Shown here in pieces: positions 1 to 35,173 of a stretch of DNA of 64,000 nucleotides; position 1 is the first letter of the stretch, and every line of letters starts with the position of its first letter. Location of the stretch: positions 1-64,000 of IMG/VR virus record IMGVR_UViG_3300042541_001760. The stretch is one strand, 5' to 3'. Below the pieces are notes generated by a model. The model had not been told where the DNA came from, did no database searches, and saw nothing but the letters and a program-made list of their open reading frames with translations. A program made the translations under genes and the position numbers.

Positions 1-3000
1 TACTAGGAAATGGTGTTTCAGTTGGTGTGGCAGTGTTTGTTGGGGTTTTAGTATTGGTTGGTGTTTGAGTAGTAGTAGTAGTATTAGTAGGCGTTTGAGT
101 AGTAGTAGGAGTTACCGTTGGTGTTGGGGTTTGGGTTGTAGTAGTGGTAGGTGTTTCTGTTCTAGTAGGGGTGTTAGTTGGCGTTTCATTTTGTGTTGGG
201 GTATTAGTTGGTGTTTCAGTTTGTGTTGGTGTTGGTGTCTGAGTGTTAGTCCGAGTATTAGTCGGAGTTGGAGTGTTTGTGGTTGTTTCGGTTGGGGTAA
301 TGGTATTAGTCGGTGTATTTGTAGGTGTTTGCGTAGGTGTTTGTGTTGGGGTTTTAGTCGGTGATTTTGTCACCGGTGGTGTCATGGTTGGTGTAGGTGT
401 CGGTGTATTTGATGGAGTTACGTCAGGTGTTTGTGTTGGGGTTTGTGTCTGAGTACTTGTTGGTGTATTTGTTGGGGTATTTGTTGGGGTTGGAGATTCC
501 GGCGTTGTTGGGGTTGGTGTTGGGGTTGTAGTTTTTGTTGGTGTATTTGTTGGTGTATTTGTTGGTGTAACAGTATTTGTTGTCGTGTTTGTTGGCGTGT
601 TTGTTGGTGTGTTTGTTGGTGTATCGGTATTTGTTGGTGTATTTGTTGTTGTGTTTGTTGGTGTTCTTGTTGGGTTCGGACTCGATAAAGGGGTTTTTGT
701 GTTTGTTGGTGTAACAGTATTTGTTGGTGTTTGAGTCGCGGTTTGAGTCGCGGTGGTGGTTATTGTTGGCGTATTTGTTGGTGTAACAGTATTTGTTGGT
801 GTTTGAGTCTCGGTTTGAGTTGGGGTAATGGTTATTGTTGGCGTAACAGTATTGGTAGGGGTTTTAGTTGGGGTAACGGTAGGTGTTGGTGTTGTCGTGG
901 GTGTTGGGCATACCACATCACCATTTAGAACTAAATTACACTCATCACAATCGTCAAATAACCTATACGAACTAAATGGTAATGAGGTATTAGGTATACC
1001 TCTTGAAATTACGGTACAAGCACTAAATCCATCTTCGGTTGTTAGTAAAAACGTATTTTGGGTACTACTAATTAATATACCTAATAGATCCGGCTGATTA
1101 GTTAAGTCAATACGGTAAGTACCACAACAAGAACTTAAAACAATTGGTAAAGTAGTTGTGCTCGGAGTTGGGGTATGTGTAGGTGTTGGGCTAGGTGTTG
1201 GACAAGCTCCTCCGGGTAAGTAATTAGCAATACAAGTATCACAATCACCAGTGAAATTAAAAACATAATCAGCAGTTTCAAAAACAAGATTAACATAACC
1301 GTATGTTAATTTCGTACAACCCGAATACCCATCAGTTTCAATATAATAAATTTCATTTAGAGTTAATCCAGAAGCGATTGCTGGATTTGTAAATTTAATA
1401 TTGGTATTACCACAACAAGAAGAGAATACTAATTCTACTTTTGTTGGGGTAGGTGTTGGGGTTGATGTTTGAGTTGGGGTTCTAGATGGATTATTAGTTC
1501 TAGTAGGTGTAGGGGTTGACCTATTACTCGGCGTTGATGTTTTAGTTGCGGTTATTGTAGGGGTAACCGTAGGTGTTGGGGTTGGGGTAGGCGTTAACCC
1601 TAAACAATCATTACAACTATTGTAAGGCCCAATAAATGAAGTTATTTGATTAGGACAACAAGAACAAGACCCACTCATAGTAACAACAAAACAATCCGTC
1701 TCAACATAAGAAGAATTATTTAATTCGGTAATACTATTTTGGGTGCAATTATTATATGAAGTAAAATAACCCCCAACTATTAAATTTAGACCGTCGTTTG
1801 TTAATGATACTTTATAAGCCGAACCACCACCAAAACCATTTCCTGTGACAAATGAAGTTACAACAGATCCGGTGGAATCCAATTTAACAATACCATTATA
1901 AGTTACCCCTTGATATGTGGTGAAATTACCAACGATTATATAATTACCATCAGAATCAACCTCAATATCTCTTATTGTTCCTCCACTAAATCCAACTCCC
2001 GTATTGAAACTATTGTCTACTGTTCCGTTTGAATTTAACTTTATTAATCCATTATGATTAATTCCGTTATATTGAGTAAAGTCACCACCAACTAAAATGG
2101 TATCATCCCCTAATACTTTAACCGCATAGACCGAATTATTAAACCCTACCCCACAATTAAATGCCGGTTCGATATTACCACCATTTGTTAACGCCACTAT
2201 CTTATTAGATGATATTCCATCAAACTCAGTAAAAGACCCGACCGCAATTATTGTTCCATCAGATAATAAATCTATGTCATAAACATATTCATCATTAATA
2301 TTTGGTAAAAAACCTCCATTACCAAAACCAGGATCAACACTACCATTATAATCTAATCTTATTAGTTTATGATAATATATTCCTCCGGGGTTACTAAATG
2401 TACCCCCAACCAATATTTGATTATTAGGTTGTATTTTTATTTTAGATATTGCACCTCCATTGGGGAAGTTTATTGTAGTGAATCCTGGGTCTATTAATCC
2501 TGTCGAATCTACTCTTTGTATTAGGTTACCGGCAATGTTTACTTGTTGAGCTAAACCAACCAATACGTATGTGTCTGGTTGTTGAACAACTTCATTAACA
2601 TATACATAACTTGGACCTCCGTAATTAAATGTTGTATCTAAAGTACCATTAGGATTTAATCTTATGACCTCATCTGACAAACTAATACCACTATATTGTG
2701 AGAAATTACCCGCCAATAATACCTTATCATCAATTTGTACATCAACACCAATTACAAAATTATTAAATCCTGAACCAATTCTAAAATCTCCCGTATTAAT
2801 TGTTCCGGGTAAAATATTAATATTGACATCATATATTGAATTTAAAACCATTGTACTTGTGGTACATCCACTATAAACTCTTCCATCGGTACACGCACTT
2901 AATTCATAACAATATCTTTGAATGAATGTTGGGGTAACCGTTGGTGTTTGTGTTGGGGTTGCCGTATTTGTTGAGGTTACCGTAGGTGTTGCCGTATTTG

Positions 3001-4498
3001 TTGCGGTTACCGTAGGTGTTACCGTCGGTGTTGAGGTTGTTGTTGGTGTTGGAGTAGGACATATAATCCCTATTGTGTCCAATCTACATGTATCACAATC
3101 TAAATATTCGGATATTGAAACGAAATCGTATAATATGTCAGGGGCATGATTAACAACCGTAGTACATCCAGTATAGCCATCTGTAATTAAATAATATGTT
3201 ATTAATGGGTTTAAGGAATAAATTAATTCTGACTCTTCAGTTAAACCAATATAAATTTCATCACAACAATCTTTAAAGGCTTTTTGTGGTCTAGTTGGTG
3301 TTGGGCTAGGTGTTTGAGTTGGTGTTGGTGTAGGACAATTATTATTACCGGTACTATCTGTTAAACAATTAATACAATTAGTATAAGGATTACTAATAGA
3401 AATAAATTCGTAAAAGTTATCAGGTCTTACGGGAACAATAGTCACACAACCAACAAATTGAGATGTCTCAATATAATATGTTTTTGTTGGATCAAGTGTT
3501 GATATAAACTGAGTTTCCTCCATCAAGGAGAATAAATCAGTTGTACAACAAGAACTAAATCCTAATTGTGGTGACGGGCTTGTTGGGGTAACTGTTGGTG
3601 TTAGTGTTGGGGTAACTGTTGGTGTTAGTGTTGGTGTGACTGTTTTGGTTGCAGTTCGACTTGGCGTGACTGTTTTAGTTGTAGTTGGAGTTGGTGTTGG
3701 TGTTGAAGTCGCGCTTGTTGGAGAGGGGGTTTGGGTTGCGGTTTTTGTGGGTATTGGTAATGGAACCCACGGACCGGTGTTTGGTTGAGGTTCTACGTAC
3801 CCAAATGTTTTAGTTGGGGTTGGGGTTGGTGTCTTAGTTGGGGTTGTGGCAGGAGTTGCGGTGTTAGTCGGAGTTTGGGTTGGTGTAGGTGTTGGGCTAG
3901 GTGTTGGGCAAGCTCCTCCGGGTAAGTAAGTAGTAATACAAGTATTACAATCACCAATTACATTAAAAACATTATCAGCGGTTTCTAAAACAAGATTAGC
4001 ATAACCGTATGTTAGTTTTGTACAAGCTGAATACCCATCAGTTTCAATATAATAAATTTCATTTAGAGTTAACCCAGAGGCAATTGCCGGATCTATGAAT
4101 TTAATATTGGTATTACCACAACAAGAAGAGAATACTAATTCTACTTTTGTTGGGGTGGGAGTATGGGTTGACGTTTGAGTTGGGGTTGACGTTTGAGTTG
4201 GGGTAGGCGGGGTAGGCGGGGTAGGCGGGGTAGGCGGGTCAATTACGACCTCACCTTTATCGTTCAAGATTAGATAAGTTATACAATCACCATCTAAAAA
4301 CCCATCAGGGGTATTAATACCAATTACTCCATTAACGTAAGTTTCTGTAGACCCATCCGAATAAGTAATAGTTCCAGATGTGTTATCAATATTCGGAGTT
4401 ACAATTACGGTAACACAATTTGCCCCATTACAATCACATATAGTAATAGTATATGGACCACAACTATATATTAGACCATTAAATATTAATTCACACAT
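1..4498 (-). CDS. Large mucin-like structural/adhesin protein (partial, runs off window start): Cys-rich modules, Thr/Pro linkers and a delta-60-type beta-propeller
   Basis: Not in the ORF track. ATG at 4498 ([16 protein letters not shown]...); same frame confirmed at several checkpoints down to position 2 (...[11 protein letters not shown]), about 1500 aa with no stop seen. Repeated SSCC...C..C...CPTP modules; propeller repeats such as [15 protein letters not shown]...[12 protein letters not shown] and [12 protein letters not shown]...[12 protein letters not shown] at about 1750-2760. Confidence 0.85.
1181..1480. repeat. 300-bp internal duplication, copy 1 (Cys-rich module)
   Basis: Aligns ungapped with 3887-4186 at roughly 90% identity; encodes [19 protein letters not shown]...[13 protein letters not shown]. 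Confidence 0.9.
3887..4186. repeat. 300-bp internal duplication, copy 2
   Basis: Partner of 1181-1480. Confidence 0.9.
4200..4238 (+). repeat. 9-bp tandem repeat (GGGGTAGGC)x4 encoding PTPPTPPTP
   Basis: Read directly from the sequence. Confidence 0.85.
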
Positions 4499-4834: not shown

Positions 4835-6118
4835 TTAGTTAAATATTTGGTTTTTGGTTTTAGTTGGTGTTCTTGTTGGTGTTAGTGTTGGTGTTCTTGT
4901 TACAGGTGGGGTTTTACGAGGCGTTCTAGTTTGTGTTGGTGAATTTGTCGGAGTTGGTGTTGGGCATGAACATACATTATTAATATATGCGGTGGCACCA
5001 CATGCACTTGAGATAATACTAACGTTTAAAGCACAGACACTATCCGTCATAAATTTCTTTAGTGTACGTGTGGTTGTAATCCCAAAACAATCTGTTACAG
5101 AAAAATATGAGAAATCACAAAGCATACCCCCATAAAGATTCCAATTTGAGCAACATTTTGCTGGTGTTGGGGTTGGTGTTCTTGTTGGGGTTGGTGTTCT
5201 TGTTACAGGTGGGGTTTTACGAGGTGTTCTAGTTGGTGTAGGAGTAGGTAATGTAGTTTTTGTTGGGGTTGGTGAACTAGACTTACTGATACTAGGAGTT
5301 ACTGTAATAGTCGGTGTTACTGTTACAGGTGGGGTTTTACGAGGTGTTCTAGTTTGTGTTCTAGTTGGTGTTACTGTTCTAGTTGGTGTTACCGTTTTAG
5401 TTGGAGTTACTGTTGATGTTCTAGTTGGTGTTACCGTTTTAGTCGGAGTTACTGTTGATGTTCTAGTTGGTGTTACTGTTCTAGTTGGTGTTACTGTTCT
5501 AGTTGGTGTTGGGGTTGAACTAACGCAAGGTATTTGAACTAATGATGTTGAGAATCCGGAATCATCCGTTATACAACTAACCGCTCCACTGAAATTAATC
5601 CATTGAGATTCATCACCAATAGGTAATGTCGTATCTAAAGGTAATGTAGACCCTGTTAGACCTAAATTGATATAATATACCACCCACTCAATCCCATTCC
5701 AATAAATAGAATAATTTTTTGAATTAGGGTATACGAAAGTGAATGATCTTTTTCCGTTTATAATTGAGCCTTCAGTTGGTGACACAACCCCACATTCAGA
5801 TGAAACCGAAAAATATTCGCAAAAGTAACCACTAGTTGAGGTTAGTGTTGGTGTATTGGTTATGGTCGGAGTTACTGATGGGGTTGGTGTTGCACCTGTT
5901 ATACAACTTTCGCACTGACCACTCATGTACTCAGGAGTAATAAAATTAGTAACACCACTTGATGTTCCTGTAAAAGATTCTAAATAATAACATGTTGTAC
6001 CACTACCATTATTATAGGACACTATGTCTCCAATTGAAAAAGCAGATAAAATTATATTAAAATTTATATCGTTAGTTGATGTTAGACAGTCGGTAAATAA
6101 TGAAGCGGTGTAAGACAT
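4835..6118 (-). CDS. Thr/Pro-rich mucin-like protein with Cys-rich modules
   Basis: 427 aa; TPTRTV and RTPRKTPPVT repeats; CxxC and CC motifs; TATTTAT motif upstream. Confidence 0.8.
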   Translation of the reverse strand: MSYTASLFTDCLTSTNDINFNIILSAFSIGDIVSYNNGSGTTCYYLESFTGTSSGVTNFITPEYMSGQCESCITGATPTPSVTPTITNTPTLTSTSGYFCEYFSVSSECGVVSPTEGSIINGKRSFTFVYPNSKNYSIYWNGIEWVVYYINLGLTGSTLPLDTTLPIGDESQWINFSGAVSCITDDSGFSTSLVQIPCVSSTPTPTRTVTPTRTVTPTRTSTVTPTKTVTPTRTSTVTPTKTVTPTRTVTPTRTQTRTPRKTPPVTVTPTITVTPSISKSSSPTPTKTTLPTPTPTRTPRKTPPVTRTPTPTRTPTPTPAKCCSNWNLYGGMLCDFSYFSVTDCFGITTTRTLKKFMTDSVCALNVSIISSACGATAYINNVCSCPTPTPTNSPTQTRTPRKTPPVTRTPTLTPTRTPTKTKNQIFN

Positions 6119-6144: not shown

Positions 6145-9100
6145 TCACGGAGTACAAGAAGTGCAACCACTAAATGTGGAACCTGTCCAAGAAATTGAAA
6201 TTCTTTCTATAGGACTTTCTTGTACACCTCTATATTCCCAACATCCTGTGATACCTGATAATTTAACTACTTGATTAATAGTTAATCCTGACAAATTAGA
6301 GTTAGTGTATATACATTCTCTACTATCTCCACTAAAGAATCTATTAAAAGAATTTTGAATTGTTGTAGAACTAAAGTCTGTTACCGTAGGGTCAATATTC
6401 CAATCAAAGTTAATTAGACCAGCCCCATTCCTATCCAACACATTCAACGAAGTATATCCGGTTAATGATGTGTATGTTGAGAATGGATTAAGTGTCTGTA
6501 ATGTCACGAACGTCCAATTGTTACCCAACTCAGAGTTTATGTTTGGCCAAACCCCACCATTAAAATTATAATTAGAGAAGTAAGATGCTGACCTTGTTTG
6601 ACCTTCAATCAACGCTAACGACTCTAAAATAAATTGGAATGACTGAGCCTCCACAGTCAAGAAACCTTCAACAAGGTTACCATTTGGATTTACAAATAAT
6701 AGGTTATTTACTTTTTTACCTAAAGTGTTTGTAAAATAATTCCAAGATGTTAGGTAATTGTTATAATCCTTTTGAACTCCCGTATTGTTAATATAGAAAT
6801 TTGATGGTAAAGATGATGTATTACCATTTGTTAATGTAGACCCTGTTCGTGTATATATCGGAGAAGATTCATTAATTACACATATAGCAATAAAACTATC
6901 CGTTTCAGGGGTGAAATTACCTGCGGTTGAGAATTGTGTTAATTCCGCATGATTAAATGGAACACCTTGAGATCCGTATATATCTGAAGTTATAGTAGGG
7001 TATGATGCGAAATCCCAACCATTATTAATTATTTGTTTAACTGACGTATCGTTTGATATACCACTATATAGTAAAGAGTTATTATCAACGTAGTTACCAC
7101 CAATTGTCGCTCCCGATAAAGTTCCTGTTATAGGATAAATCGGCCAAGAAACCCATCTTTCATCCCACAATACCATCTCATAAAGAGACCCTGTATATCC
7201 ACTTGTTAATGTTAATCCACTATACCAAGTTCTAACACTTAAAGCAACATCTTGTAATAACGAATCACTATATGACCCAGAACCGTCATAGAAAACATAA
7301 ATATTTCTATCCAAATTAGGATTACAGTTACATAGTACGTCAGATAATATATTTGACCTTGGGCTTGGTGTGTTTGTTGGAGTTACCGTTTTAGTTGGGG
7401 TTATTGATGATGTAGGGGTGACAGTTTTGGTTACACTAGGGGTTAGCGTATTTGTTCTTGTTATGGTAGGAGTTACCGTATTAGTTGGAGTTTCAGTTTG
7501 TGTTGGGGTTGTTGTTTGTGTTGGAGTTTTAGTTGCAAATGGAGTTCTATTGGGAGTTTTTGTTGGAGTTGTTGTTTTCGTAGGGGTAACGGTGCTAGTT
7601 GGCGTAGTCGTATTTGTTGGAGTTTCAGTATTTGTCGGAGTTGTTGTTTTTGTGGGAGTAACTGTGATAGTTGGGGTGGGGGTATTTGTTGGGGTTGTGG
7701 TGTTTGAAGGTGGTATAGTAATAGTTGGAGTAGGTGTTTTAGTTGATGTTGGGGTGATAGTATTTGTCGGTGTTGGTGTATTTGTTGGTGTATTTGTTGG
7801 TGTTTCAGTATTTGTTGGTGTCGTTGTATTTGTTGGAGTTTGAGTTGCGGATGGAGTTTTTGTTTGGGTTATTGTGTTTGTAGGTGTTTGTGTTTGTGTG
7901 GCGGTAACTGTGTTGGACGGCGTTTGAGTATTTGTTGGTGTGGATGTCTGAGTTGGAGTTTTAGTATTTGTTGGTGTTGTTGTTTGAGTTGGAGTCTCTG
8001 TTCTGGTTGGTGTTTGTGTAATCGTATTCGTAGGTGTTGAGGTATTAGTTGAGGTAGGTGTTTTTGTATTTGTTGGAGTTACAGTATTGGTAGGTGTAAC
8101 TGTGCTAGTTGTAGTATTTGTATTAGTTATAGTGTTTGTGGGTGTTTGTGTAGATGTTGGCGTTCGAGTTGCGAATGGAGTTTTAGCGGGGGTTTTAGTG
8201 TTAGTTGGGGTCTGAGTAATTGTTTTAGTCGGAGTATTTGTTGGTGTTGATGTAATTGTATTAGTTGGGGTGGGGGTAGGTGTTTTTGTGTTAGTTGGAG
8301 TTATAGTATTAGTAGGTGTAACTGTATTAGTTGGGGTTTTAGTAGGTGTAACCGTATTAGTTGGTGTAGATGTTTTTGTGGGTGTTTTTGTATTGGTTGG
8401 GGTTAGGGTATTTGTAGTAGTAACAGTAGAAGTTATCGTATTAGTAGGGGTTGCAGTATTTGTTGGTGTTTGAGTATTAGTAGGGGTTTTAGTTGCAAAT
8501 GGAGTTTTAGCCGGAGTTTTAGTGCTAGTTATTGTTTGTGTGGGTGTTTGTGTAATAGTGTTAGTTGGTGTTTGGGTTCTAGTGTTTGTAGGTGTCTGAG
8601 TTGGTGTTTTAGTATTTGTTTGGGTTTGAGTATTAGTAGGAGTTTGAGTATTAGTAGGGGTTTGAGTATTAGTAGGGGTTTTAGTATTAGTAGGAGTTTT
8701 AGTATTAGTAGGAGTTTGAGTATTTGTTGGTGTGGATGTTATTTGAGCAGGTGTTATAGTTGGAGTAACAGTAGTTGTTTTAGTTGGAGTTATAGTATTA
8801 GTAGGAGTTATAGTATTAGTAGGAGTTTGAGTATTTGTTGGTGTGGATGTTTGAGTTTGAGTATTAGTTTGAGTTTGAGTATTAGTAGGGGTTTTAGTTG
8901 CAAATGGAGTTTTAGCCGGAGTTTTAGTGTTTGTAGGTGTTTGTGTTTGAGTTTGTGTGGTAGTGTTAGTTGGGGTTTGAGTATTTGTATTTGTAGGTGT
9001 CTGAGTTGGAGTTTTAGTATTTGTTGGTGTAGGTGTTTGAGTTGTCGTTTCTGTGTTGGTAGGTGTTTGAGTAATTGTATTTGTAGGTGTTGGCGTTTCT

Positions 9101-11322
9101 GTGTTGGTAGGTGTTTTTGTGTTAGTAGGAGTTATAGTATTAGTAGGAGTTTGAGTATTTGTTGGTGTGGATGTTTGAGTTTGAGTATTAGTTTGAGTTT
9201 GAGTATTAGTTGGGGTTTTAGTCGCAAATGGAGTTTTAGCCGGAGTTTTAGTGTTTGTAGGTGTTTGTGTTTGTGTCGGTGTAGGTGTGGATGTTATTTG
9301 AGCAGGTGTTATAGTTGGAGTAACAGTAGTTGTTTTAGTTGGGGTAACGGTAGTGGTTGGCGTTACCGTATTAGTCGGAGTATTCGTAGGTGTGGGTGTT
9401 GGTAATATACTAAAAGTAAAATCATTAGGTAAACAAGTAATGCCGCAATTAGGACAATCAGGGTCAAATAAATTAAATGTTGGTTTTAGTATTGAGAAAT
9501 TATGTTTAACCTCCGGAGCGGAAAGCGGTGAAACGTACATCCTGAATTGGGAAATACCCCCATTAAAAGTACCAGCAAAATTCTGTTCAATTAATATGTT
9601 TGTTGTAAGGGCGGATAATGAAGTTCCACTTAATACATTGTTAGGAAATAATTCAGGATCTTGAATATAAACATTGGTGTTACCTGTAGGACATGCAGAG
9701 AATGTTAAGTTTTCTCTTAACCCTTGTGTTCCACCACCCCAACTTATACTAAAAGGGACTCCTATTTGTTTTTCTTTTTCTGTATTTAAACCACGAGGTA
9801 TTATTTCCTCTACGTCTTCAACCACAAAGAAAACTTTACCATTTACATATATCTTTAATCTACCCTTTCTATATGAACCGTCCAATAACCATTTTTCATT
9901 TAATTGGACTATTTCAATTTGTTCAGGAGTTAAATTATCGTGAGTTACGGGTGGCTTTATTAAATAAACGGTATTGTTTGCTAGTGAGTCCAGATATTCA
10001 AACTTGGTAATATCCCCTAACCCACCTCTATAAAATAAATCACAAGTATCTAACCAAGTATATCTTTCCCAAACAACATCCACCAAAAACCAATGTTCTG
10101 ATATTGTAAAGGCCGAATTAACTGGAACACAATAGTCATATATCCCGTTTTCAGAGCAATAATCATCAACCGTATATCCTGTTGTATATGTAATTCCTGA
10201 TGTATTACAAGAACCTGTTGTTTCGCAATCACCTGTGAATCTTAAAATTCTTACACCAATTTTTGGGTTATCATCGTCACCACATAATCTAAGTGACATT
10301 GCGTTTGACATTGAATCATAAATCGGATCCTTGTCAGGTATGTTACTAATTGTTCCATTTGAGCATCCGCAACCACAACCAATATCGTGAGTTACAGTAA
10401 TTCCTGATGGATTATAAACGTCAACACATCTTGAATTAGTTACACCTGTGTCAGCACAAGCGCAAGTTTTTAAACAGTCAACTAATGACTCCGTTACTCT
10501 TGTATATCCTGTGTCAGAAGATGGGACACCTGCCGCATGGTGATAAAACTTGTTTTCCGCCCTTGTACCCATATAAAAGAACGTGTTCTTATTATTTGGA
10601 TAAATTTCGTTTAATGTGGTTTGACCTGAAGATGGAGTGAATTCATTTGTTAAACGAGGCTTCAAAACCATTTCAACAGACCAACCCTTATTCATTCTTG
10701 ATGGAAAAATATCATAATCAAAACCGAATAACTTATAGAATCCTTGGTAGAATCCACCATATAATTCTTGATAGTAACCTTCCGTAGTTCCCGTTTTTGA
10801 TACTATTTCATATAGAGTTTGTCCTGTTATACCTGAGAATCTTACATTTGGTTCTGAGGTGTAACCTGTGACTTGAAAAAACTTTAATCTTCTATCAAAG
10901 GATAACCTGTCAAATTTTTGAGAATCATCTAATAATCCGTTTGTAAAGGATATTGTTTGTCCCGTCATTCCGGTAACCAAACCATTATCAATTCCTGTTA
11001 ATCCAATGTCACATGCGGTTTGTGCAGTTAAACAAGTTAAATCAATATTATCAGGATTATAATAATTTTCAGATACGATAATGTTGTTAAAATCATAAGT
11101 ACCATAAGTCAATATAGGTTGTGTTGTGGTACCAGTACTATTTAAATCAAAATAAAATGGTAATCTATTGCCGTGAGTTTGAGCAATCAAATAAGGTGAA
11201 AAAACAACTTCTTGATTATAATCAACTTCATCGGAAGCCAAAGAAATGTCTGTTAAATCTAAGAGATATGGACTTAAATAAAATTTCTTATAAACATATT
11301 GATTAATGTTTTGTTGAGCCAT
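6145..11322 (-). CDS. Giant virion protein: N-terminal domain ending in a LamG/ConA-like fold, about 680-aa Thr/Pro mucin stalk, C-terminal vWA-like domain
   Basis: Track ORF 6145..11346; MAQQN start at 11322 preferred because it follows the TATTTAT motif. [21 protein letters not shown] resembles a LamG C-terminus; [12 protein letters not shown] contains a DxSxS MIDAS motif. Confidence 0.8.
8624..8731. repeat. 18-bp tandem array (about 6 copies) encoding [12 protein letters not shown]
   Basis: GTTTGAGTATTAGTAGGA-type unit repeated head to tail. Confidence 0.85.
8729..9342. repeat. Segmental duplications inside the mucin stalk: 59 bp (8729-8787 = 9284-9342) and 152 bp (8798-8949 vs 9122-9273, 2 mismatches)
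   Basis: Direct alignment by eye. Confidence 0.85.
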
Positions 11323-11326
11323 TATA

Positions 11327-11373
11327 TTTTTTATTGATAAATACACGACATTGAAGTATTTATTGATAAAAAA
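11327..11373. promoter_or_regulatory. Divergent late-promoter pair: 18-bp imperfect inverted repeat, each arm carrying TATTTAT
   Basis: TTTTTTATTGATAAATAC-N11-GTATTTATTGATAAAAAA (16/18 match) between divergent starts at 11322(-) and 11377(+). Confidence 0.65.
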
Positions 11374-16086: not shown

Positions 16087-16709
16087 TGGAAGACCAAAAG
16101 GAGTTTGAAGAAATGCAAGCTAAACTACTACAACTTAAGGAGTTCATATCACAAAATATGGGAGACCATGAGGAGGAAGAAGATGAGGATATTGATTATG
16201 ATTTAATCAAATCTGAATTCGGTGTTGATTTAATGGCAATGGAGAATGAAATTATGTCACGTAAAGAACAATCTCCGTTAAAATATAACCTTGTTCATCC
16301 TGACGCAATTGACCCAAAATATAATTACGAATCCGACTCAGGATTTGATTTATATTCAGTTGAGGATATTGTTATACCCCCATTTGGTAGGGCATTAGTT
16401 CCGACGGGTATTTGTTTTGACATTCCCGAAGGATTGGAGATTCAAGTTAGAACAAAGAGTGGATTGGCTATTAATCAGGGTTTAATGGTAATGAATTCAC
16501 CTGGAACGGTAGATGCGGGTTACAATGGAGAAGTTAAAGCAATTATATTTAATACTAATAACTCTGAATTCACAATTAAGAAGGGTATGAAAGTTGCTCA
16601 AGGTGTATTATGTCCCGTATTAGCCGGTGGATATGTGGAATTAATTAAAGTATCGGAAATAAAAGAAAAAGACAGAAACTCAAACGGTTTCGGATCAACA
16701 GGAATATGA
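16086..16709 (+). CDS. dut: dUTPase with acidic N-terminal extension
   Basis: DSGFDL, RTKSGLA, GTVDAGYNGE and RNSNGFGSTG motifs. Confidence 0.92.
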   Translation: MEDQKEFEEMQAKLLQLKEFISQNMGDHEEEEDEDIDYDLIKSEFGVDLMAMENEIMSRKEQSPLKYNLVHPDAIDPKYNYESDSGFDLYSVEDIVIPPFGRALVPTGICFDIPEGLEIQVRTKSGLAINQGLMVMNSPGTVDAGYNGEVKAIIFNTNNSEFTIKKGMKVAQGVLCPVLAGGYVELIKVSEIKEKDRNSNGFGSTGI

Positions 16710-18340
16710 TAACAATAGGGTATAGTACAAGAACATCAAATCCACAATTTTCCGAATATTTGAAAAAATCATCAGGATTAAAGGATGTTGAGGTGATTGA
16801 GAAAGTTAATAATGGTGAAAAGTCATTGTCTCAGGTTTATAATGAGATAATTGACGAATCATCAAATGACATTATTGTGCTTTGTCACGACGACATCTAT
16901 TTTGACACAAAGAATTGGGGTAAAAGATTATTAAGGTCTTTTGAAAAAAATCCTGAGTTTGGTATCTTGGGAGTTGCTGGAAGCACTTATATGCCAAAAT
17001 CAGGTCAATGGTGGGAAGATAGATCAAAAATGGTTGGTGTAGTTAATCACGAACATCAAGGTAAAAAATGGGAGTCTAAGTACTCAATAAATGAAGAGCA
17101 TGAAATTAAGGAAACTGTTATAGTCGATGGATTATTTATTGCTTTAAATAAAAATAAAATAAAAAAAGGATTCGACGAATCTGTTGAGGGTTTTCATTTT
17201 TATGATGTTGAATTCTCATTTCAAAATCATTTAGACGGGGTTAAGGTCGGTGTTATGTTTAACGTAAGGGTAACCCATAAATCAATTGGGCAAACTAATC
17301 AGAAGTGGGAGGAAAATAGAAATATTTTCGCGGAAAAAAATAAAAACATATTACCCATTAAGATAAAATACAAAGACACTGATAAACTTAATGTTTTAAT
17401 AGGATGTCTATTTTTTCAAAAATTCACAGGTTCAGAAATGTATGTTTTTGAGTTATCAAAGAATTTAATTAAATTAAATTGTAATGTAACCATTGTTGCA
17501 TCTGAAACAAATGGACCTTTAGTTAGTATAGCCGAAAAATTGGGTGTAAAAGTTAAAAATATTAAAGAGTCACCAGGATATAAATTAGGTGATGGTAAGT
17601 GGATGCTTAATACACAAAATGGTCAAGAAATATCAAAACCGAATCAATATTATAAAATGTCGGAAGTTAATTTTGATATTATTCATTGCCAACACAAACC
17701 AATAGTCGATGTGTTAAATATGTTGTATCCAACAATAGATAAGATATGTACTATACACTCTGAAGTAATTGATTTGGAAAATCCAGTAATACACCCAACA
17801 ATTAAAAAATACATTGCGATTAGACCCGAAATAAAAGACCAAATAGTAAATAAATTTGGAATTGATGAAAATCTTGTTGAGGTTATTTATAACCCTGTTG
17901 ACGAAACAAAGTTTTATAATAAAAATCTAAAATCAAAAAATTATATATTATTTGTTGGGTCAATTGATTATTTAAGAGAAAAAACGATTAGAGATTTAAT
18001 TGAGGTATCTAAAAATGAAAATAAAGAACTGTGGTTAGTGGGAGAAAATAAATCAAATTATTTGAATGAGATACTCCTAAATAATCACGTTAAACATTTC
18101 GGACCGACATTAGATGTAAATAAATATATTCACGAATGTAGTGAAACTGCCGGTATTTTATTGGGTAGAACAACAATAGAAAGTTGGATGAGTGGAAAAC
18201 CAAGTTGGATTTACAATGTGGATAATTTGGGTAATATTATAGGGAAGGAACTACACGAGTGTCCGAATGATTTGGAAAAATTTAACTCAAAAGTAGTATC
18301 AGAAAAAATAAAAGAAGAATATATAAAAATTTTAAATTAG
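16706..18340 (+). CDS. Bifunctional glycosyltransferase (GT-A/GT2-like plus GT-B/GT4-like)
   Basis: N-terminal VLCHDDIYF and FHFYDVEF; C-terminal GSEMYVFELSKNL...IYNPVDE...LGRTTIE. Confidence 0.75.
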   Translation: MITIGYSTRTSNPQFSEYLKKSSGLKDVEVIEKVNNGEKSLSQVYNEIIDESSNDIIVLCHDDIYFDTKNWGKRLLRSFEKNPEFGILGVAGSTYMPKSGQWWEDRSKMVGVVNHEHQGKKWESKYSINEEHEIKETVIVDGLFIALNKNKIKKGFDESVEGFHFYDVEFSFQNHLDGVKVGVMFNVRVTHKSIGQTNQKWEENRNIFAEKNKNILPIKIKYKDTDKLNVLIGCLFFQKFTGSEMYVFELSKNLIKLNCNVTIVASETNGPLVSIAEKLGVKVKNIKESPGYKLGDGKWMLNTQNGQEISKPNQYYKMSEVNFDIIHCQHKPIVDVLNMLYPTIDKICTIHSEVIDLENPVIHPTIKKYIAIRPEIKDQIVNKFGIDENLVEVIYNPVDETKFYNKNLKSKNYILFVGSIDYLREKTIRDLIEVSKNENKELWLVGENKSNYLNEILLNNHVKHFGPTLDVNKYIHECSETAGILLGRTTIESWMSGKPSWIYNVDNLGNIIGKELHECPNDLEKFNSKVVSEKIKEEYIKILN

Positions 18341-18341
18341 T

Positions 18342-18962
18342 ATGGGATTTAATAAGTTTTTTGAAAATATTTTTTGTATTAACTTGGATAAAAGGAAGGA
18401 TAGGTGGTCATTTTTTACCGAAGAAATGAAAAAAAATTCTATTGATAATGTTGTTAGATATGAAGGGATTGATGGGGATGAAATCCATAACCCAACAAAC
18501 ATGCTAAACGGAGAATTAGGTATATTATTAACACACCTATCTTTAATAAAAGAATGTAAAAAACGTAATTATAAAAATGTTTTAATTTTTGAGGATGATA
18601 TAATTTTGAATGAAAATTATAATAATTTTGATGATTATATGAATCAAATACCTGATGATTGGGATTTTATTTATTTTGGTGGAAATCATGTTTATGGTAA
18701 AACTCCTGAAAAAATTAATAATAATGTTTTAAAATTGAATTATACAGTGTCATTACATTGTGTTGCGATTAGTAATACAATGTTTGACGTTATTATTAAT
18801 AAATTAAGCGCGTTCGAAAAACAAGTGGATGCTTGTTATGCCGACCTGCATAAGTCAGTTAATTGTTATGGCATCACACCCAACTTAGCATTACAAAAAG
18901 AAGGGTATAGTAATATACAAAATAAAACAGTAAACTATTATAGTTTTTTCCAAAATATATGA
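18342..18962 (+). CDS. GT25-family glycosyltransferase
   Basis: FCINLDKRKDRW, GELGILLTH and VLIFEDD motifs. Confidence 0.8.
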   Translation: MGFNKFFENIFCINLDKRKDRWSFFTEEMKKNSIDNVVRYEGIDGDEIHNPTNMLNGELGILLTHLSLIKECKKRNYKNVLIFEDDIILNENYNNFDDYMNQIPDDWDFIYFGGNHVYGKTPEKINNNVLKLNYTVSLHCVAISNTMFDVIINKLSAFEKQVDACYADLHKSVNCYGITPNLALQKEGYSNIQNKTVNYYSFFQNI

Positions 18963-19774
18963 AAAATTTTTATACTGCTTATTTAATGGGTGGATTGGGA
19001 AATCAAATGTTTCAAATGGCGCACGCAATATCCCAATCTTGGAAACATGACTCCGATTGTTTTTTTTTAAAAAAATCCGAAACGCCAGGTGATGGTAAAC
19101 AACCAAACAATTACATTAATAATATTTATAAAAATTTCAAATTTTCTGATGATGATAAATTTGATTTATTAATAAGAGAAAATCACTTTAATGATGCTAA
19201 AATCAATATAACACCAAATAAATCTATTAAATTTTGGGGGTACTTCCAAAGTAGTAAAAATTTCTTAGGGTATGATGAAAAAATTAAATCTATTTTTGAA
19301 CCTGATTTAGATTTTATAAAAAAAATAAAAAGTAAATTTCCACAATTAAATGGGAATACTACCTCTTTACACATAAGAAGGGGTGATTATTTATCAATAA
19401 CTAATATATTACCCATAATAGATAAAACATATTTTGATTTTTGTTTAAAAGAAATTGGTGACTATGGTCAAATTTTTATTTTTACTAACGATAAAGAATG
19501 GGTTAAAAATAATATAAAATATGAAAATTCAATTATTGTAACTGATTTGGAAGATTATGAAGAATTATGGATGATGAGTTTGTGTACTAATAACATATTA
19601 TCTAATTCTAGCTTTTCTTGGTGGGGTGGGTTTTTAAATAAAAATACTAATAAAAAAGTTATGGTGCCGAGTATTTGGTTTGGACCACAGGGGATACATC
19701 CACATTTTAATATTTTTGAAAAGGATTGGACGAAAATAAATGTTTTTTATGAAAATGGTATGTTAAAAACATAA
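18959..19774 (+). CDS. GT11 alpha-1,2-fucosyltransferase-like
   Basis: GGLGNQMFQ, GYFQS, HIRRGDY and NSSFSWWG motifs. Confidence 0.88.
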   Translation: MKNFYTAYLMGGLGNQMFQMAHAISQSWKHDSDCFFLKKSETPGDGKQPNNYINNIYKNFKFSDDDKFDLLIRENHFNDAKINITPNKSIKFWGYFQSSKNFLGYDEKIKSIFEPDLDFIKKIKSKFPQLNGNTTSLHIRRGDYLSITNILPIIDKTYFDFCLKEIGDYGQIFIFTNDKEWVKNNIKYENSIIVTDLEDYEELWMMSLCTNNILSNSSFSWWGGFLNKNTNKKVMVPSIWFGPQGIHPHFNIFEKDWTKINVFYENGMLKT

Positions 19775-19811
19775 TTTACTTAAAATAAAAAAAAGTTAAT
19801 ATTATATTGTT

Positions 19812-20603
19812 ATGGGAGTAAGGATAATTTATAATGGTAGATGTGGAAATAGAGTTTTTCAGTATGTTACCGCAAGAATTTTTGCGGAAAAAAATAAATT
19901 AAATTTAGAAACGGGGTTAGGTTGCGACATTGTAAAAACGAGTCCAATTAAAAATTTTGATGAATCATCCTGTTCACATGAAATTGGAATAAATTCATCA
20001 TCATTCGTGAACGATGAAATATTGTTTAGTGGTATCCACTACCATTATATATTCAGTGACTATTTTCAAAATTGTGTTTATATTAACAATAATAAAGAAT
20101 TGGTTAGAACTTTCTTTGATTTACCTGAGTTTGAAAAAAATACAAAAGATATTGTTTTACATCTTAGATTAGATGATAAAGTCCACTCAAGTGATATTAA
20201 TAATCCCGAAAATTGGGATAATGCGGAAATAATTCACCCTGATTACTATAAAAAAATACTTGATTTTGAAACATACGAAAAAATATATATTGTGGTTGAT
20301 AAAATAAAATATGATTGGGAAAAAAAATATTTATCTTATTTTGATAAATACAATCCAATTATAGTTAGTCAAACTCCGTATGAAGATTTTATGTTTATGA
20401 GGACATTTAATAAAATTATAACCTCAACAAGCACTTACTCTTATTGGTCAGCGTTTTTAAGTGATGCGGAAAAAATATACACATTTAAAAATGCGGGACA
20501 TCTTGGAATTAATTTAAGGTCACACGGGAGTCATGTTAAAGAACTTTGGAACATAAAAAATACATCTATTGCTATAGATGAAAAATTTTACTTTGGAATA
20601 TGA
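19812..20603 (+). CDS. Divergent GT11-like glycosyltransferase
   Basis: GRCGNRVFQY, DYFQ, LHLRLDD and STSTYSYWSAFLS parallel the GT11 motifs. Confidence 0.7.
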   Translation: MGVRIIYNGRCGNRVFQYVTARIFAEKNKLNLETGLGCDIVKTSPIKNFDESSCSHEIGINSSSFVNDEILFSGIHYHYIFSDYFQNCVYINNNKELVRTFFDLPEFEKNTKDIVLHLRLDDKVHSSDINNPENWDNAEIIHPDYYKKILDFETYEKIYIVVDKIKYDWEKKYLSYFDKYNPIIVSQTPYEDFMFMRTFNKIITSTSTYSYWSAFLSDAEKIYTFKNAGHLGINLRSHGSHVKELWNIKNTSIAIDEKFYFGI

Positions 20604-20659
20604 AAAATTATAATTTAGAATTATATAACGAATCAAATTATAAATTTAGTAAAATATGA
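20600..20659 (+). other. 19-codon mini-ORF coupled at both ends (gene remnant or translational coupler)
   Basis: MKNYNLELYNESNYKFSKI; ATGA overlap with both neighbouring genes. Confidence 0.5.
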
Positions 20660-21672
20660 AAAAAATAATCGTATTGGGTGGTGGTGGTTTCATAGGTGGT
20701 CACTTAGCTAAAAGAAAAAAAGATGAAGGTAATTGGGTTAGAGTTGTTGATATTAAAAAACATGAATATTATAATCATGATGAAATATGTCACGAATTTA
20801 TTATTGGTGATTTAACAGATTATAATTTTGTTAAATCAATAATTGATGAAGATGTTGATGAAATATACCAATTAGCCGCGGATATGGGTGGAGCTCTTTA
20901 TATATTTACAGGTGAAAATGATGCGGATGTTATGTATAATTCGGCTACTATCAACCTTAATGTTCTAAAAGAATGCGTAAATAAAAAAGTCAAAAAAATA
21001 TTTTATTCTTCTTCTGCATGTATATACCCAGAACATAATCAATTAGATTCTAATAATCCAATATGTGAAGAAAGTTCGGCGTATCCCGCAAATCCTGATT
21101 CTGAATATGGGTGGGAAAAATTATTTAGCGAAAGATTGTATCTATCTTTTAATAGAAATTATGGGTTAGACGTTAGAATCGCAAGATTTCATAATATATT
21201 TGGACCATATGGAACTTGGGAGGGTGGTAAAGAAAAATCGCCAGCGGCGTTGTGTAGAAAAATTGCGGAGTGTGAAGAAAATGGTGAAATTGAGGTTTGG
21301 GGGGACGGAAAACAGACTAGATCATTTTTATTTATAGATGAGTGTTTAGAGGCGGTTTCAAGACTTATGGAGTCTGACTTTACAGGTCCAGTTAATATTG
21401 GTTCTGAGGAAATGGTTACAATAAATCAATTATCATCTATGATAATTGATATTTCAGATAAAAATGTTAAAATATTAAATTTATTTGGGGAAGAATTTTT
21501 TAAAAAATATGGTTTTAAATGTCCTTTAGGTGTTAAAGGACGTAATTCAGACAACAATTTATATAAACAAAAAATAGGGTGGGGTGTTAGCCAACCATTA
21601 TCAATAGGGTTAAAAAAAACATTTTATTGGATAAATAATCAAGTAAAAAAAAATAAAAAATATGAAAAATAA
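20656..21672 (+). CDS. NAD-dependent epimerase, GDP-mannose 3,5-epimerase-like
   Basis: GGGGFIG, QLAADMGG, YSSSACIYP, YGWEK, RFHNIFGP and KSPAALCRK. Confidence 0.85.
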   Translation: MKKIIVLGGGGFIGGHLAKRKKDEGNWVRVVDIKKHEYYNHDEICHEFIIGDLTDYNFVKSIIDEDVDEIYQLAADMGGALYIFTGENDADVMYNSATINLNVLKECVNKKVKKIFYSSSACIYPEHNQLDSNNPICEESSAYPANPDSEYGWEKLFSERLYLSFNRNYGLDVRIARFHNIFGPYGTWEGGKEKSPAALCRKIAECEENGEIEVWGDGKQTRSFLFIDECLEAVSRLMESDFTGPVNIGSEEMVTINQLSSMIIDISDKNVKILNLFGEEFFKKYGFKCPLGVKGRNSDNNLYKQKIGWGVSQPLSIGLKKTFYWINNQVKKNKKYEK

Positions 21673-21895
21673 TTACTATAAAAATAGAGAATTTGGGGAA
21701 TTAAAATTATCAATCAATGATTCATTTATGTGTGATGAATTTTATTCCTAAGCGGGTCAAGACATTTTTGTTATTAGCGTACTCAATGGAAAAAAAGAAG
21801 GTGTTTTTTTGGATATAGGAGCCTCAGATCCACAAATAATAAATAATACTTTTTTACTGGAAAAGAAATTTGGGTGGAAAGGGGTTCGTTTTTAA
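21662..21895 (+). pseudogene. 5' fragment of an FkbM-type methyltransferase with an internal stop
   Basis: ...DEFYS*AGQDIFVISVLNGKKEGVFLDIGASDPQIINNTFLLEKKFGWKG; TAA at 21749-21751 replaces the Gln (CAA) of the YSQxGQD motif. Confidence 0.8.
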
Positions 21896-22047
21896 ATAAA
21901 AATAAATATAAAAAAATATTTGTTCCCAGTATTTGGTTCGGACCAAGCGGTGAAAAAAATTACCAAGACATCTACGAAGATGTATGGATAAAAATAAATG
22001 TAAAATATGAAAATGGAAAACTTATTCACAAAAACATCAATATCTGA
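21883..22047 (+). pseudogene. Orphan 3' fragment of a GT11 gene
   Basis: GSFLNKNKYKKIFVPSIWFGP...WIKINVKYENG parallels the C-terminus of 18959..19774 (GGFLNKNTNKKVMVPSIWFGP...WTKINVFYENG). Confidence 0.8.
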
Positions 22048-22783
22048 TAGTTACGATTTTAAAAATGTATGTAATGCGGCTTCTAAAGATGACTCAATAT
22101 TTAGTAATTTTAAATCTAACAGAGCGTTTACTGAAATATTAGAACACACAACATACAACCAAGGTAATGGGTATATAAATGAAATTGAAAAAGACTGTAA
22201 AATAGATTTAAATTTTATAAATAAGTTTAAAGAGAATGATTTGCAGGGTAACCCAAAATTAGAAACATTTAAAGACCCATACGGTAGTATTTCACCATCT
22301 ACCATTAGATACATAAAAGTTTTAAATGATTTAATTTCTTTATTTGGTGACCTAACTGACTTCAGAATTGTTGAAATTGGTGTCGGTTATGGTGGACAGT
22401 CTAAAATAATACAAGATTATTTTAAAATAAAAGAATATAATTATATTGATTTACCGGACGTTTTATCGTTAACTAAAAAATATCTAAAAACATTTAATTA
22501 CGATAATTTAAATTTTTTAGATTTTACATCATTACCCGATAAGTCTTATGATTTAATCATATCTAACTACGCCATAACAGAATGTAGTAAAGAAATACAG
22601 GACTTATATGTTGAAAAAATTATTAATAAATCAAAACATGGGTATATAACAGGAAATGATATTGGTGGTTTTTTTAATATAAAAAATTATACAAAAAACG
22701 ATTGGTTATTAAAATTACCTAATGTAAAAATAACCGATGAGAGACCATTAACACATGATAAAAATTATTTACTATATTTTTAA
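22007..22783 (+). CDS. Putative sugar O-methyltransferase
   Basis: FKSNRAFTEILEH, ISPSTIRY, IVEIGVGYGGQ and ISNYAITE. Confidence 0.75.
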   Translation: MKMENLFTKTSISDSYDFKNVCNAASKDDSIFSNFKSNRAFTEILEHTTYNQGNGYINEIEKDCKIDLNFINKFKENDLQGNPKLETFKDPYGSISPSTIRYIKVLNDLISLFGDLTDFRIVEIGVGYGGQSKIIQDYFKIKEYNYIDLPDVLSLTKKYLKTFNYDNLNFLDFTSLPDKSYDLIISNYAITECSKEIQDLYVEKIINKSKHGYITGNDIGGFFNIKNYTKNDWLLKLPNVKITDERPLTHDKNYLLYF

Positions 22784-22786
22784 CAT

Positions 22787-23596
22787 ATGTTAAAATTAAA
22801 TATGATAAGCAGGATTTTTGAACATAACGGTTCATCGACCGTCAATAGGGTACCAAAAAACTTTATATGGGACTTTAATGGGGTTGACGGATTAGTTGAT
22901 TTCTATATTGATGGTGATGTTCATTTAGGTTTAAAAAATAAAAATGATGGTAGGATAAAGATTTTATGGACATTAGAATCACCATATTTTAATAATAACG
23001 TTTTTGACTTTATTAAGGATAATTTAACAACTATAATAGATACTTTTGATTTAATTTTTACATACGACGATGATTTATTAAAATTAAACGATAAGTTTTG
23101 TTTTTTACCTGTTGGGGGTTCTTGGATAGTAAGTCCATCGATAAGAAAAAAAACAAAGACGGTATCAATGATAACATCTAATAAACGACTCACTCCACAA
23201 CAAAATGAAAGGGTTTTATTTGCTAATAATAATAAAAACAATATTGACGTATATGGTAGAGGGTTTAATGAAATAATCAATAAAGAAGAGGGTTTAGATG
23301 ACTACATGTTTTCTATATGTATAGAAAACGCAACCCATAATACTTACTTTACGGAAAAAATTTTAGATTGTTTTTTGACAGGTACAATCCCCGTCTATAA
23401 AGGGACTAAAAACATTACAAATTTTTTTGACACTGATGGAATTTTATTTTTAGATAAAATAGAAATCAAAGACTTAACACATAATTTATATCAATCAAAA
23501 ATAAAAAGTATTGAGGATAATTTCATTCGCGCAACTGAATTTATGTTACCTGAAGATATTATATATAATAAATTAAAAGAAAAAAAAATAATATAA
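22787..23596 (+). CDS. GT10 alpha-1,3/4-fucosyltransferase-like
   Basis: YMFSICIEN...YFTEKILDCFLTGTIPVYKG donor-binding motif; WTLESP. Confidence 0.75.
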   Translation: MLKLNMISRIFEHNGSSTVNRVPKNFIWDFNGVDGLVDFYIDGDVHLGLKNKNDGRIKILWTLESPYFNNNVFDFIKDNLTTIIDTFDLIFTYDDDLLKLNDKFCFLPVGGSWIVSPSIRKKTKTVSMITSNKRLTPQQNERVLFANNNKNNIDVYGRGFNEIINKEEGLDDYMFSICIENATHNTYFTEKILDCFLTGTIPVYKGTKNITNFFDTDGILFLDKIEIKDLTHNLYQSKIKSIEDNFIRATEFMLPEDIIYNKLKEKKII

Positions 23597-23652
23597 TAAA
23601 AATTATTTAATCACTAAAGATTGAATACATAACAATACAAAAAATTTGAATA

Positions 23653-24336
23653 ATGGATTTTACTTTTGGTATAATTACTGGCGGGGATAATGATAAGATG
23701 ATTAATGAGATAATTGACTCAATTGAGAATGAAAATATTCCAAATTATGAAATTATTATCGTAGGTAATTCAAATTTAGTAAGGAAAAATACTAAAGTGA
23801 TAAATTTTGATGAGACTATAAAAGTAGGATGGATTACAAAAAAGAAAAATATCATAACTAAAGAGTCTAATTTTGAAAATATTGTTTTTCTTCATGATTA
23901 TATAAAATTAAATGAGGGTTGGTACAACGGTTATTTGGAGAGTGGTAACGATTTTGCGATTAGAATGGATAAAATTATAAACCACAACGGTGAAAGATTT
24001 AGAGATTGGTGTATATGGCCACATAACAACAATGAAATGGATTCTTTTATAGGTAGGGATTGTTTAATCCCTTATACTATAAAACATTTAAGTAAGTATA
24101 TGTATATCTCAGGATCCTATTGGGTTGCCAAAAAATATGTTATGATGGAATTCCCGTTAAATGAAAATTTAACGTGGGGACAAGGAGAAGATGTTTTATG
24201 GTCCAAACAAGTTAGAGAAAAATATGAATTTAATATGAACACCAATTCTAGTGTTTTTATAATTAAAGGAGTTAAAGATAGGGTTTTTAATGAACCGGAT
24301 GAAAATAAAATAGAAGCACTAAAAAGTATAAATTAA
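23653..24336 (+). CDS. GT-A (GT2-like) glycosyltransferase
   Basis: FTFGIIT, YEIIIVG, WITKKKN, VFLHDY and GEDV. Confidence 0.65.
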   Translation: MDFTFGIITGGDNDKMINEIIDSIENENIPNYEIIIVGNSNLVRKNTKVINFDETIKVGWITKKKNIITKESNFENIVFLHDYIKLNEGWYNGYLESGNDFAIRMDKIINHNGERFRDWCIWPHNNNEMDSFIGRDCLIPYTIKHLSKYMYISGSYWVAKKYVMMEFPLNENLTWGQGEDVLWSKQVREKYEFNMNTNSSVFIIKGVKDRVFNEPDENKIEALKSIN

Positions 24337-24337
24337 A

Positions 24338-25711: not shown

Positions 25712-25716
25712 ACACT

Positions 25717-26523: not shown

Positions 26524-26836
26524 AACAAATTTAAACGATTTTTTTAAAGGTTGGTTTGTTGGTAATTTTGATCCAACCTTAAACAACACTGAAGATTTTG
26601 AAGTTGCAGTTAAAAGATACAATGCGGGTAATTATGAAGAAAAACACCACCATAAAATATCAACAGAAATAACAGTAATTATCGAAGGAGAGGTTGAAAT
26701 GAATGGAACCAAATACATCAAAGATGATATAATTACGATACAACCAAATGAATCCACTGATTTTAAATGCATAACTGATGTTGTTACAGTTGTTGTTAAA
26801 ACACCATCAGCAAATAATGATAAATATATAAATTAA
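26516..26836 (+). CDS. Cupin-domain protein
   Basis: GWFVGNFDP, HHHKISTEITVIIEG and VVVKTPS. Confidence 0.75.
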   Translation: MIKTNLNDFFKGWFVGNFDPTLNNTEDFEVAVKRYNAGNYEEKHHHKISTEITVIIEGEVEMNGTKYIKDDIITIQPNESTDFKCITDVVTVVVKTPSANNDKYIN

Positions 26837-26839
26837 ACT

Positions 26840-28185: not shown

Positions 28186-28202
28186 TTAATAAAAATAAAA
28201 TT

Positions 28203-28562: not shown

Positions 28563-28563
28563 T

Positions 28564-31232: not shown

Positions 31233-31244
31233 TATATTTGGCGT

Positions 31245-35055: not shown

Positions 35056-35119
35056 GTATGAAAAAACCACATCTAATAAATAAAATAATACGACAATAAG
35101 ATAACAAAATAATTATTAA

Positions 35120-35173
35120 ATGACATATGAAGAATTAACTAAAGTAATAAAAATAGTAAATAAAAATAAGTGA
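35120..35173 (+). other. 17-codon mini-ORF overlapping the GTG start of fcl
   Basis: MTYEELTKVIKIVNKNK with a GTGA overlap; a second 13-codon ORF lies at 35058-35099. Confidence 0.4.

Follow-up and report, generated by a model that had tools for sequence, protein, structure and literature searches.

A cysteine-rich bead protein on threonine/proline linkers in a T4-like huge phage of lake water: an undescribed module family and a possible surface fibre

A gene at the left end of a 64,000-nucleotide stretch of viral DNA (the window; positions 1 to 64,000 of IMG/VR virus record IMGVR_UViG_3300042541_001760) encodes, as far as it is present, a 1,499-residue protein in which five copies of a six-cysteine module and one beta-propeller are strung on threonine/proline (TP) linkers. 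The module is an undescribed domain family, found only in phages among the contexts examined. We lean towards reading the protein as a flexible fibre or adhesin on the surface of a huge T4-like freshwater phage, its beads stapled by disulfides and its linkers possibly glycosylated. The record, labelled 'linear' and rated 89% complete by CheckV, consists of one 261,052-bp contig (32% GC, no terminal repeats), and the window makes up its first 64 kb.

When open ends were allowed in the open reading frame (ORF) listing, a frame of 1,499 codons was found at 2..4498 (-), with its ATG at 4498 and its 3' end open. The translation contains no stop across 4,497 nt, and no alternative genetic code is required for reading the window. 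The N-terminus is complete; the C-terminus is missing because the contig, and not just the window, ends within a Thr/Pro tract. Closing the contig ends into a circle would bring a stop four codons on, a result without meaning since a terminal repeat is lacking. The first 1.9 kb of the gene are contained in at least 24 lake-water metagenome runs. Logan contigs from four such runs, compared with window positions 1-5000, match 80-565, 803-1352, 1421-4058 and 4127-4698 with 0 differences and no indels reported. Between them they span a large share of the gene, with modules 1-4 and the greater part of the propeller, and a single 2,359-nt contig corresponds to 1421-3779, which holds modules 2 and 3, most of the propeller and the beginning of module 4. 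The protein of ~1500 aa running off the end of the window, which the preliminary description of this DNA had proposed, is thus encoded by a frame that stays free of frameshifts and stops in other read sets.

We also considered that the frame arose in assembly, by mis-joining of repetitive TP-coding DNA, or that the gene is decaying, so that no 1,499-aa product of this form would exist. The contig break falls inside a TP tract, the Logan contigs offer many alternative joints (every one of them within TP-coding repeats), and two of the modules, copies 1 and 4, are similar enough (87% identity) to invite mis-assembly. Nevertheless, independent contigs from four runs agree without differences or indels over 1421-4058 and other parts, no stop interrupts the frame despite the low GC content, and metagenomic relatives share the architecture of the protein, all of which makes an artefact very improbable.

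The 47 cysteines of the protein are arranged in a regular pattern. Five complete modules of 76-80 aa each follow the form CC-x31-35-C-x22-24-CxxC-x8-9-C with PTP directly after, and both the six cysteines and the CPTP ending are invariant across the alignment of the five. Copy 1 (aa 120-197; 3908..4141 (-)) has its cysteines at residues 126, 127, 159, 184, 187 and 197. It precedes the propeller together with copy 2 (aa 311-388; 3335..3568 (-)) and copy 3 (aa 405-480; 3059..3286 (-)), while copy 4 (aa 1022-1099; 1202..1435 (-)) and copy 5 (aa 1118-1197; 908..1147 (-)) follow it. The high identity of copies 1 and 4 points to a recent duplication, the remaining copies being 27-32% identical to copy 1, and pairwise BLASTP (E 1e-18 between copies 2 and 3, E 1e-8 between copies 1 and 5) places the repeat far beyond chance. 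TP-rich linkers of 16-113 residues part all units of the protein. The earlier picture of beads on a string, with at least five copies of a ~70-aa six-Cys module separated by TP linkers around a beta-propeller, is borne out in each of these respects.

That propeller, seven-bladed and extending over aa 560-933 (1700..2821 (-)), belongs to the known delta-60 repeat (DUF5122) family. It is matched by PF17164 in five stretches (E 4e-40; 136.1 bits against a cut-off of 27) and by TIGR02608 (99 bits against 76.5). In the AlphaFold2 (AF2) model the predicted local distance difference test score (pLDDT) exceeds 90 across aa 560-933, and Foldseek places seven-bladed propellers at the top of its matches (E 8.5e-10; template modelling (TM) score 0.78 by target). 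Its 1,250 homologues are mostly bacterial surface proteins, many of them with the type IX secretion system (T9SS) sorting domain PF18962. A Cys-rich stretch that ends in CxxC and a TP linker lies after the propeller (aa 918-965; 1604..1747 (-)); it was found through a hidden Markov model (HMM) match at aa 918-977 that covers the C-terminal three quarters of the module. The propeller flanks are modelled with pLDDT <50, and the C-terminal flank aligns with the module at an hhalign probability of only 32%. The Cys-rich flanks may represent the two halves of one module into which the propeller was inserted; otherwise the stretch after the propeller may be a degenerate copy. At the other end, the N-terminal domain (aa 1-87; 4238..4498 (-)) has six cysteines in a spacing other than that of the module. 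No family was found for it, its Pfam matches being sub-threshold at best, and it is possibly the attachment end.

With ~500 of its 1,499 residues in TP tracts, the protein has the long Thr/Pro tandem-repeat tracts that characterize mucin-like proteins. The terminal tract (2..907 (-)), at least 302 aa long and 64-76% T+P, is built of imperfect 12-72-nt tandem repeats and ends at the contig end. Substantial TP tracts occur in only four stop-to-stop frames of the genome, and the three TP-richest of these (~500, 145 and 607 residues) lie side by side on the minus strand, at 2-11346.

Searched both as isolated modules and within whole proteins, the module has no match at E≤0.1 in Pfam-A, PHROGs or NCBIfam, and its profile has none among PDB sequences, in agreement with the preliminary description, which could not assign it to a known family. 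For nucleotide relatives, a megablast of 1-6200 against 50,697 phage records returned no match, as did a tblastn of modules 2-3 against the same records; a scan of IMG/VR with modules 2-3 as one protein yielded no relative, and the literature searched held no description of these bead proteins. In a word search, eight unnamed metagenomic proteins (871-1,304 aa) proved to contain the module along with TP linkers. A profile was then built from 23 copies in seven proteins, with a mean column identity of 30% and all six cysteines invariant. Against 1.84 billion cluster representatives it matched 235 proteins at E≤1e-3, 39 of them at E≤1e-10 and none at E≤1e-30. TP-rich linkers are present in 104 of the best 150 matches, most of which contain several copies, and the source names of the ten matches that were looked up all read 'hypothetical' or 'surface protein' or carry a propeller label. 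The HMM search of metagenomes that had been suggested for the copies therefore recovers a real family of 235 representatives, phage-borne wherever the context was examined.

All metagenomic contigs examined around module genes are phage-like. The P0004 gene lies on a 326.5-kb contig and adjoins PolB and a T4 gp13 homologue, an arrangement repeated at P0006; P0029 and P0020 have RNR, amidase and holin genes as neighbours; and P0162 lies in a locus (L007) that encodes a fibre protein of the Peptidase_S74 type alongside SprB-repeat proteins. The module also recurs elsewhere in the genome studied here, at the N-terminus of a 537-aa SprB-repeat protein (genome 226143-227753) and as two copies in a 246-aa protein (genome 228022-228762). 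In the surrounding region (genome 221-234 kb; L001), large minus-strand genes with matches to SprB-repeat and Ig_J make up a tail-fibre-like locus whose gene order (a primase-like gene, a plus-strand propeller/bead gene, then the large minus-strand genes) is that of the P0162 locus. From its presence in tail-fibre-type loci of two phages, the module can be regarded as a constituent of fibre-type proteins among these phages.

The AF2 model of copy 1, made from the 23-row alignment (mean pLDDT 89.9; predicted TM score 0.77), has six strands and then a helix that begins at the CxxC. On this model the module is confidently predicted to be a small beta-barrel with a C-terminal helix, without assignment to a known fold. 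Foldseek against the PDB gave no significant match (best E 0.65), so that structural comparison of a single module, likewise proposed beforehand, ended in a confident fold with no significant counterpart among solved structures. Double-psi and other small-barrel folds were enriched in the weak Foldseek rows, at TM scores of just 0.24-0.38, and are not claimed. Unnamed phage models in BFVD matched at TM scores of 0.61 and 0.68 (probability 1.0; 24-27% identity), one of which bears the label 'SprB repeat', and structures in the ESM Atlas matched at 0.62-0.67 to clusters that are 100% viral. A feature search of the same atlas returned unnamed viral clusters alone, with scores (0.81-0.85) below the reliable range.

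Variation among module copies bears on the chemistry of the cysteines, numbered here in order so that C4 and C5 form the CxxC. All six are present in 234 of 299 distinct copies. The commonest departure is a single Cys at the CC site, usually without C6; the association of these two losses has an odds ratio of 29 (Fisher p 1e-13), a value uncorrected for relatedness and indicative only. This common four-Cys variant retains one N-terminal Cys, C3, C4 and C5. A rarer variant (P0032, P0035) keeps CC, C4 and C6 and has lost both C3 and C5, and a similar copy, without CxxC, occurs in P0004, P0005 and P0009. Loss of cysteines in pairs predicts disulfides between C3 and C5, between one Cys of the CC site and C4, and between the other and C6; the module thus probably contains three disulfides.

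Alternatively, the module may bind zinc, with the CxxC and two other cysteines chelating Zn(II) and the remaining pair forming one disulfide or staying free. Zinc binding would allow folding in the reducing cytoplasm, where the bead proteins are made without a signal peptide. A CxxC at the start of the sole helix is a common zinc-knuckle geometry, and the four cysteines of the common variant could make a Cys4 site. Disulfides, by comparison, form with difficulty in a reducing cytoplasm; this phage encodes adjacent thioredoxin and glutaredoxin genes (genome 193194-193668 (-); L005, L006), and the 89%-complete record yielded no sulfhydryl oxidase of the Erv1/ALR type. Under these circumstances oxidation would have to come after lysis. 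The pattern of cysteine loss, however, favours disulfides over zinc, because a Cys4 site on the CxxC would be destroyed by the loss of C3 and C5, whereas pairwise disulfides fit the variants that keep CC, C4 and C6. Further, one Cys of the CC site and C6 are lost in a coupled fashion, and the majority of modules have an even count of six cysteines. Zinc ribbons and treble clefs have four ligand cysteines conserved as a set, usually in two CxxC-type knuckles; the module has a single CxxC and loses its cysteines in pairs, not as four, and it matches no zinc-finger family in sequence or fold. We consider a zinc-binding module unlikely.

The 1,499-aa gene adjoins two further bead genes on the same strand. 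The nearer one (4835..6118 (-)) encodes a 427-aa TP-linked protein that starts with a four-Cys module variant (aa 8-85; 5864-6097 (-)) and continues with a bead of a second type and a third bead rich in Cys. The farther one (6145..11346 (-)) encodes a protein of 1,733 aa in which a ~640-aa TP/TN tract separates an N-terminal globular part of 650 aa from a C-terminal one that closes with a final four-Cys variant (aa 1673-1733; 6148-6330 (-)). Related CxxC-TP endings had previously been pointed out in both neighbours, and these can be recognized as four-Cys variants by an iterated HMM (domain E, within a small set, 5e-5 for the 427-aa protein and 9e-6 for the 1,733-aa protein); against the strict six-Cys profile, however, the relationship is weak, with hhalign probabilities of 30% and 54%, respectively. 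The second bead type, of ~100 aa (aa 95-205 of the 427-aa protein), has conserved Cys, an NG[KR] motif and a Trp, and P0004 has three copies of it (E 5e-15). P0163 of this genome (L001:6714-8186 (+), aa 285-400) and P0007 have a comparable bead-sized block in common (E 2e-22). On these similarities, the phages share a toolkit of small Cys-rich beads shuffled on TP strings.

Pfam searches of the globular parts of the 1,733-aa protein gave sub-threshold matches only, the N-terminal 650 aa matching Laminin_G_3 at E 0.1, and the same holds for the N-terminal domain of the 1,499-aa protein, this neighbour and their relatives taken together, including a match to tail-fibre gp32 (E 0.12). The TP/TN tract is a nearly uninterrupted run of Thr, Pro, Asn and Gln with large internal repeats. 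The C-terminal part opens with a DGSGS motif, resembling a candidate metal ion-dependent adhesion site (MIDAS) of a vWA domain. By eye, a small ORF of ~69 codons (4594-4803 (-)) can be seen in the 336-bp gap between the 427-aa and 1,499-aa genes.

A 20-kb glycan island (16706..37045 (+)) begins 5.4 kb away from where the third bead gene starts, and is transcribed divergently from all three. On the plus strand it encodes a fusion of glycosyltransferase (GT) families GT2_5 and GT4 (16706-18340), a GT25 (18342-18962), two GT11 enzymes (18959-19774 and 19812-20603), an epimerase (20656-21672), a GT10 (22787-23596), a HAD plus nucleotidyl-transferase fusion (24338-25711), an FkbM methyltransferase (25717-26523), a second epimerase (35170-36072) and a GDP-mannose 4,6-dehydratase (36053-37045); many ORFs between these named genes have no family. 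GT10 and GT11 are fucosyltransferase families, and the dehydratase and epimerase pair constitutes the GDP-fucose route. The TP-bead genes of the P0004 and P0006 phages each have a glycosyltransferase cluster directly upstream. One of these clusters comprises a PF11397 GlcNAc-transferase, GT_PLOD, HtrL_YibB and FkbM, and the other GT10, GT25, FkbM and HtrL_YibB. As that lineage is distantly related to the present genome (2 of 16 proteins of the locus are matched here), co-location of such clusters with bead genes recurs in two distantly related lineages, with differing enzyme sets. The island and the upstream clusters support the idea that the TP linkers may serve as glycan acceptors, with the island as the candidate source of linker O-glycans. 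We put forward, tentatively, a broader possibility: that a clade of freshwater huge phages builds mucin-like, self-glycosylated fibrils, in which fucose-pathway enzymes and glycosyltransferases would decorate hundreds of linker threonines. It is similarly conceivable, though no firmer, that the linkers of such fibrils bear shuffled, undescribed disulfide-rich beads, namely the six-Cys barrel and at least one further type.

We infer the virion location, disulfide chemistry, glycosylation and binding role of the bead protein, and postulate the following. Small independent domains, five barrels and one seven-bladed propeller, would be strung on extended Thr/Pro linkers. Three disulfides per barrel, of which the C6 bond would tie the C-terminal tail to the first strand, could make the beads rigid knobs, resistant to protease and shear once the particle reaches oxic lake water. 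The linkers, akin to those of mucin or to the PT boxes of cellulases, may be O-glycosylated in the infected cell by the island of the phage, using its GDP-fucose pathway and its GT10, GT11, GT25, GT2 and GT4 enzymes. Propeller and beads together would give multivalent, low-affinity binding to polysaccharide of the host surface or of particles, and such binding might widen the capture radius before the tail engages. None of the three bead-protein N-termini has, on reading, the look of a signal peptide, which fits proteins that are freed by lysis as parts of the particle.

Beyond the redox setting already described, several observations weigh against such a glycosylated surface fibre. Its putative placement on the virion is drawn from the genes, and none of the RNA runs contains the bead-gene stretch. 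Within the 1,499 aa, from which the C-terminus is missing, there is no recognized fibre, baseplate-attachment or chaperone domain; nor did Pfam and PHROGs reveal Peptidase_S74, T4 gp34-37 domains, or collagen or beta-helix repeats. The 5.4 kb between the bead genes and the island are occupied by unrelated genes (WYL, exonuclease, dUTPase), and the polypeptide-type glycosyltransferases PF11397 and PF25342 were undetected in the genome, although control genomes likewise gave no match, so this absence carries little weight. Sugar-nucleotide and glycosyltransferase islands of other phages, aquatic T4-like phages among them, are usually read as remodelling the surface polysaccharide of the host.

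These points lend themselves to a different explanation, in which the bead proteins are not part of the particle at all but sticky mucin-like matrix, decoy or exclusion proteins, either released by lysis or intracellular. On this explanation, the glycan island remodels the lipopolysaccharide or capsule of the host rather than the linkers. The nucleotide-metabolism genes that separate island and bead genes agree with it, as does the distance of the three bead genes from the head-gene block at 48-64 kb. It is opposed by the occurrence of the same module in proteins of tail-fibre-type loci, both here and in a relative, by the absence of any signal peptide or membrane anchor that would suit a role at the cell surface, and by the glycosyltransferase clusters beside bead genes in this genome and in the distantly related second lineage. 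We regard this explanation as unlikely, and retain the surface fibre as the reading that we lean towards.

The genome itself is that of a distant T4-like huge phage of lake water. The window contains a gp23-type major capsid protein of 612 aa (49603-51441 (-)), a T4-type portal protein (gp20; 55394-57256) and a large terminase (57320-59092). The best database relatives of the capsid protein, at only ~40-43% identity, come from uncultured huge phages, Microcystis phage Mel-JY01 and Flavobacterium phages. Pfam Gp23 fits best over aa 356-597, and relatives from tblastn extend over only 54-64% of the capsid protein, which may carry an extra N-terminal or inserted region. SprB repeats are present in other fibre-like proteins of the genome and, together with the T9SS domain often present in the closest cellular homologues of the propeller, hint at a Bacteroidota host. 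The T4 late-promoter motif TATAAATA is not enriched in the window (19 seen, 16.7 expected), and none stands upstream of the 1,499-aa gene. No tRNA gene was detected in the 64-kb window by ARAGORN, and none of its sequence looked human or toxin-like. A 135-aa WYL-domain protein (E 7e-5; 12983-13390 (+)) is a possible regulator.

The module family is missing from curated libraries and solved structures, yet has 235 diverged representatives. With a name for it, portions of hundreds of large proteins now labelled 'hypothetical' in huge phages of fresh water could be annotated, and a marker would be at hand for their surface or fibre proteins; being small and stable-looking, the module is also tractable for structure determination and binding screens. 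Bead genes beside glycosyltransferase clusters in two lineages offer a testable case for autonomous virion glycosylation in tailed phages other than mycobacteriophages. If self-glycosylated fibrils do exist in these phages, viruses of bacteria would have an equivalent of the glycosylated fibrils known from giant viruses.

Among known systems, T4 Hoc and the whiskers of hairy jumbo phages such as CBB, all from large myoviruses, are likewise accessory, non-essential-looking multi-domain surface proteins thought to be weakly adhesive, but the protein described here has no Ig-like or Hoc domains, far longer linkers and another type of domain. With the delta-60/DUF5122 proteins of Bacteroidota and other bacteria it shares a central domain that passes both curated cut-offs and has the same seven-bladed fold; it differs from them in being a phage protein with Cys-rich flanks and TP linkers, and in lacking both a secretion signal and a T9SS domain. 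Modular glycoside hydrolases and cellulosomal proteins have the same beads-on-a-string layout, with Thr/Pro 'PT-box' linkers and small beta-rich accessory domains, and their Pro/Thr linkers are O-glycosylated in several bacteria. The phage protein, by contrast, has neither a catalytic domain nor a match to a carbohydrate-binding module family, and its bead is a six-Cys barrel that was not seen in cellular genomes among the contexts examined. Glycosylated virions are also known from mycobacteriophages. Self-glycosylated surface fibrils occur in giant viruses such as Mimivirus, and autonomous glycosylation of fibrils or capsids by viruses is an established precedent (reviews PMC9614988, PMC4691112). 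Both kinds of virus resemble the present phage in having a virus-encoded sugar-nucleotide pathway and glycosyltransferases near surface-protein genes. In the lake-water phage, however, the bead domain is unrelated, and the putative acceptor would be the mucin-like TP tracts of a T4-like virus of bacteria.

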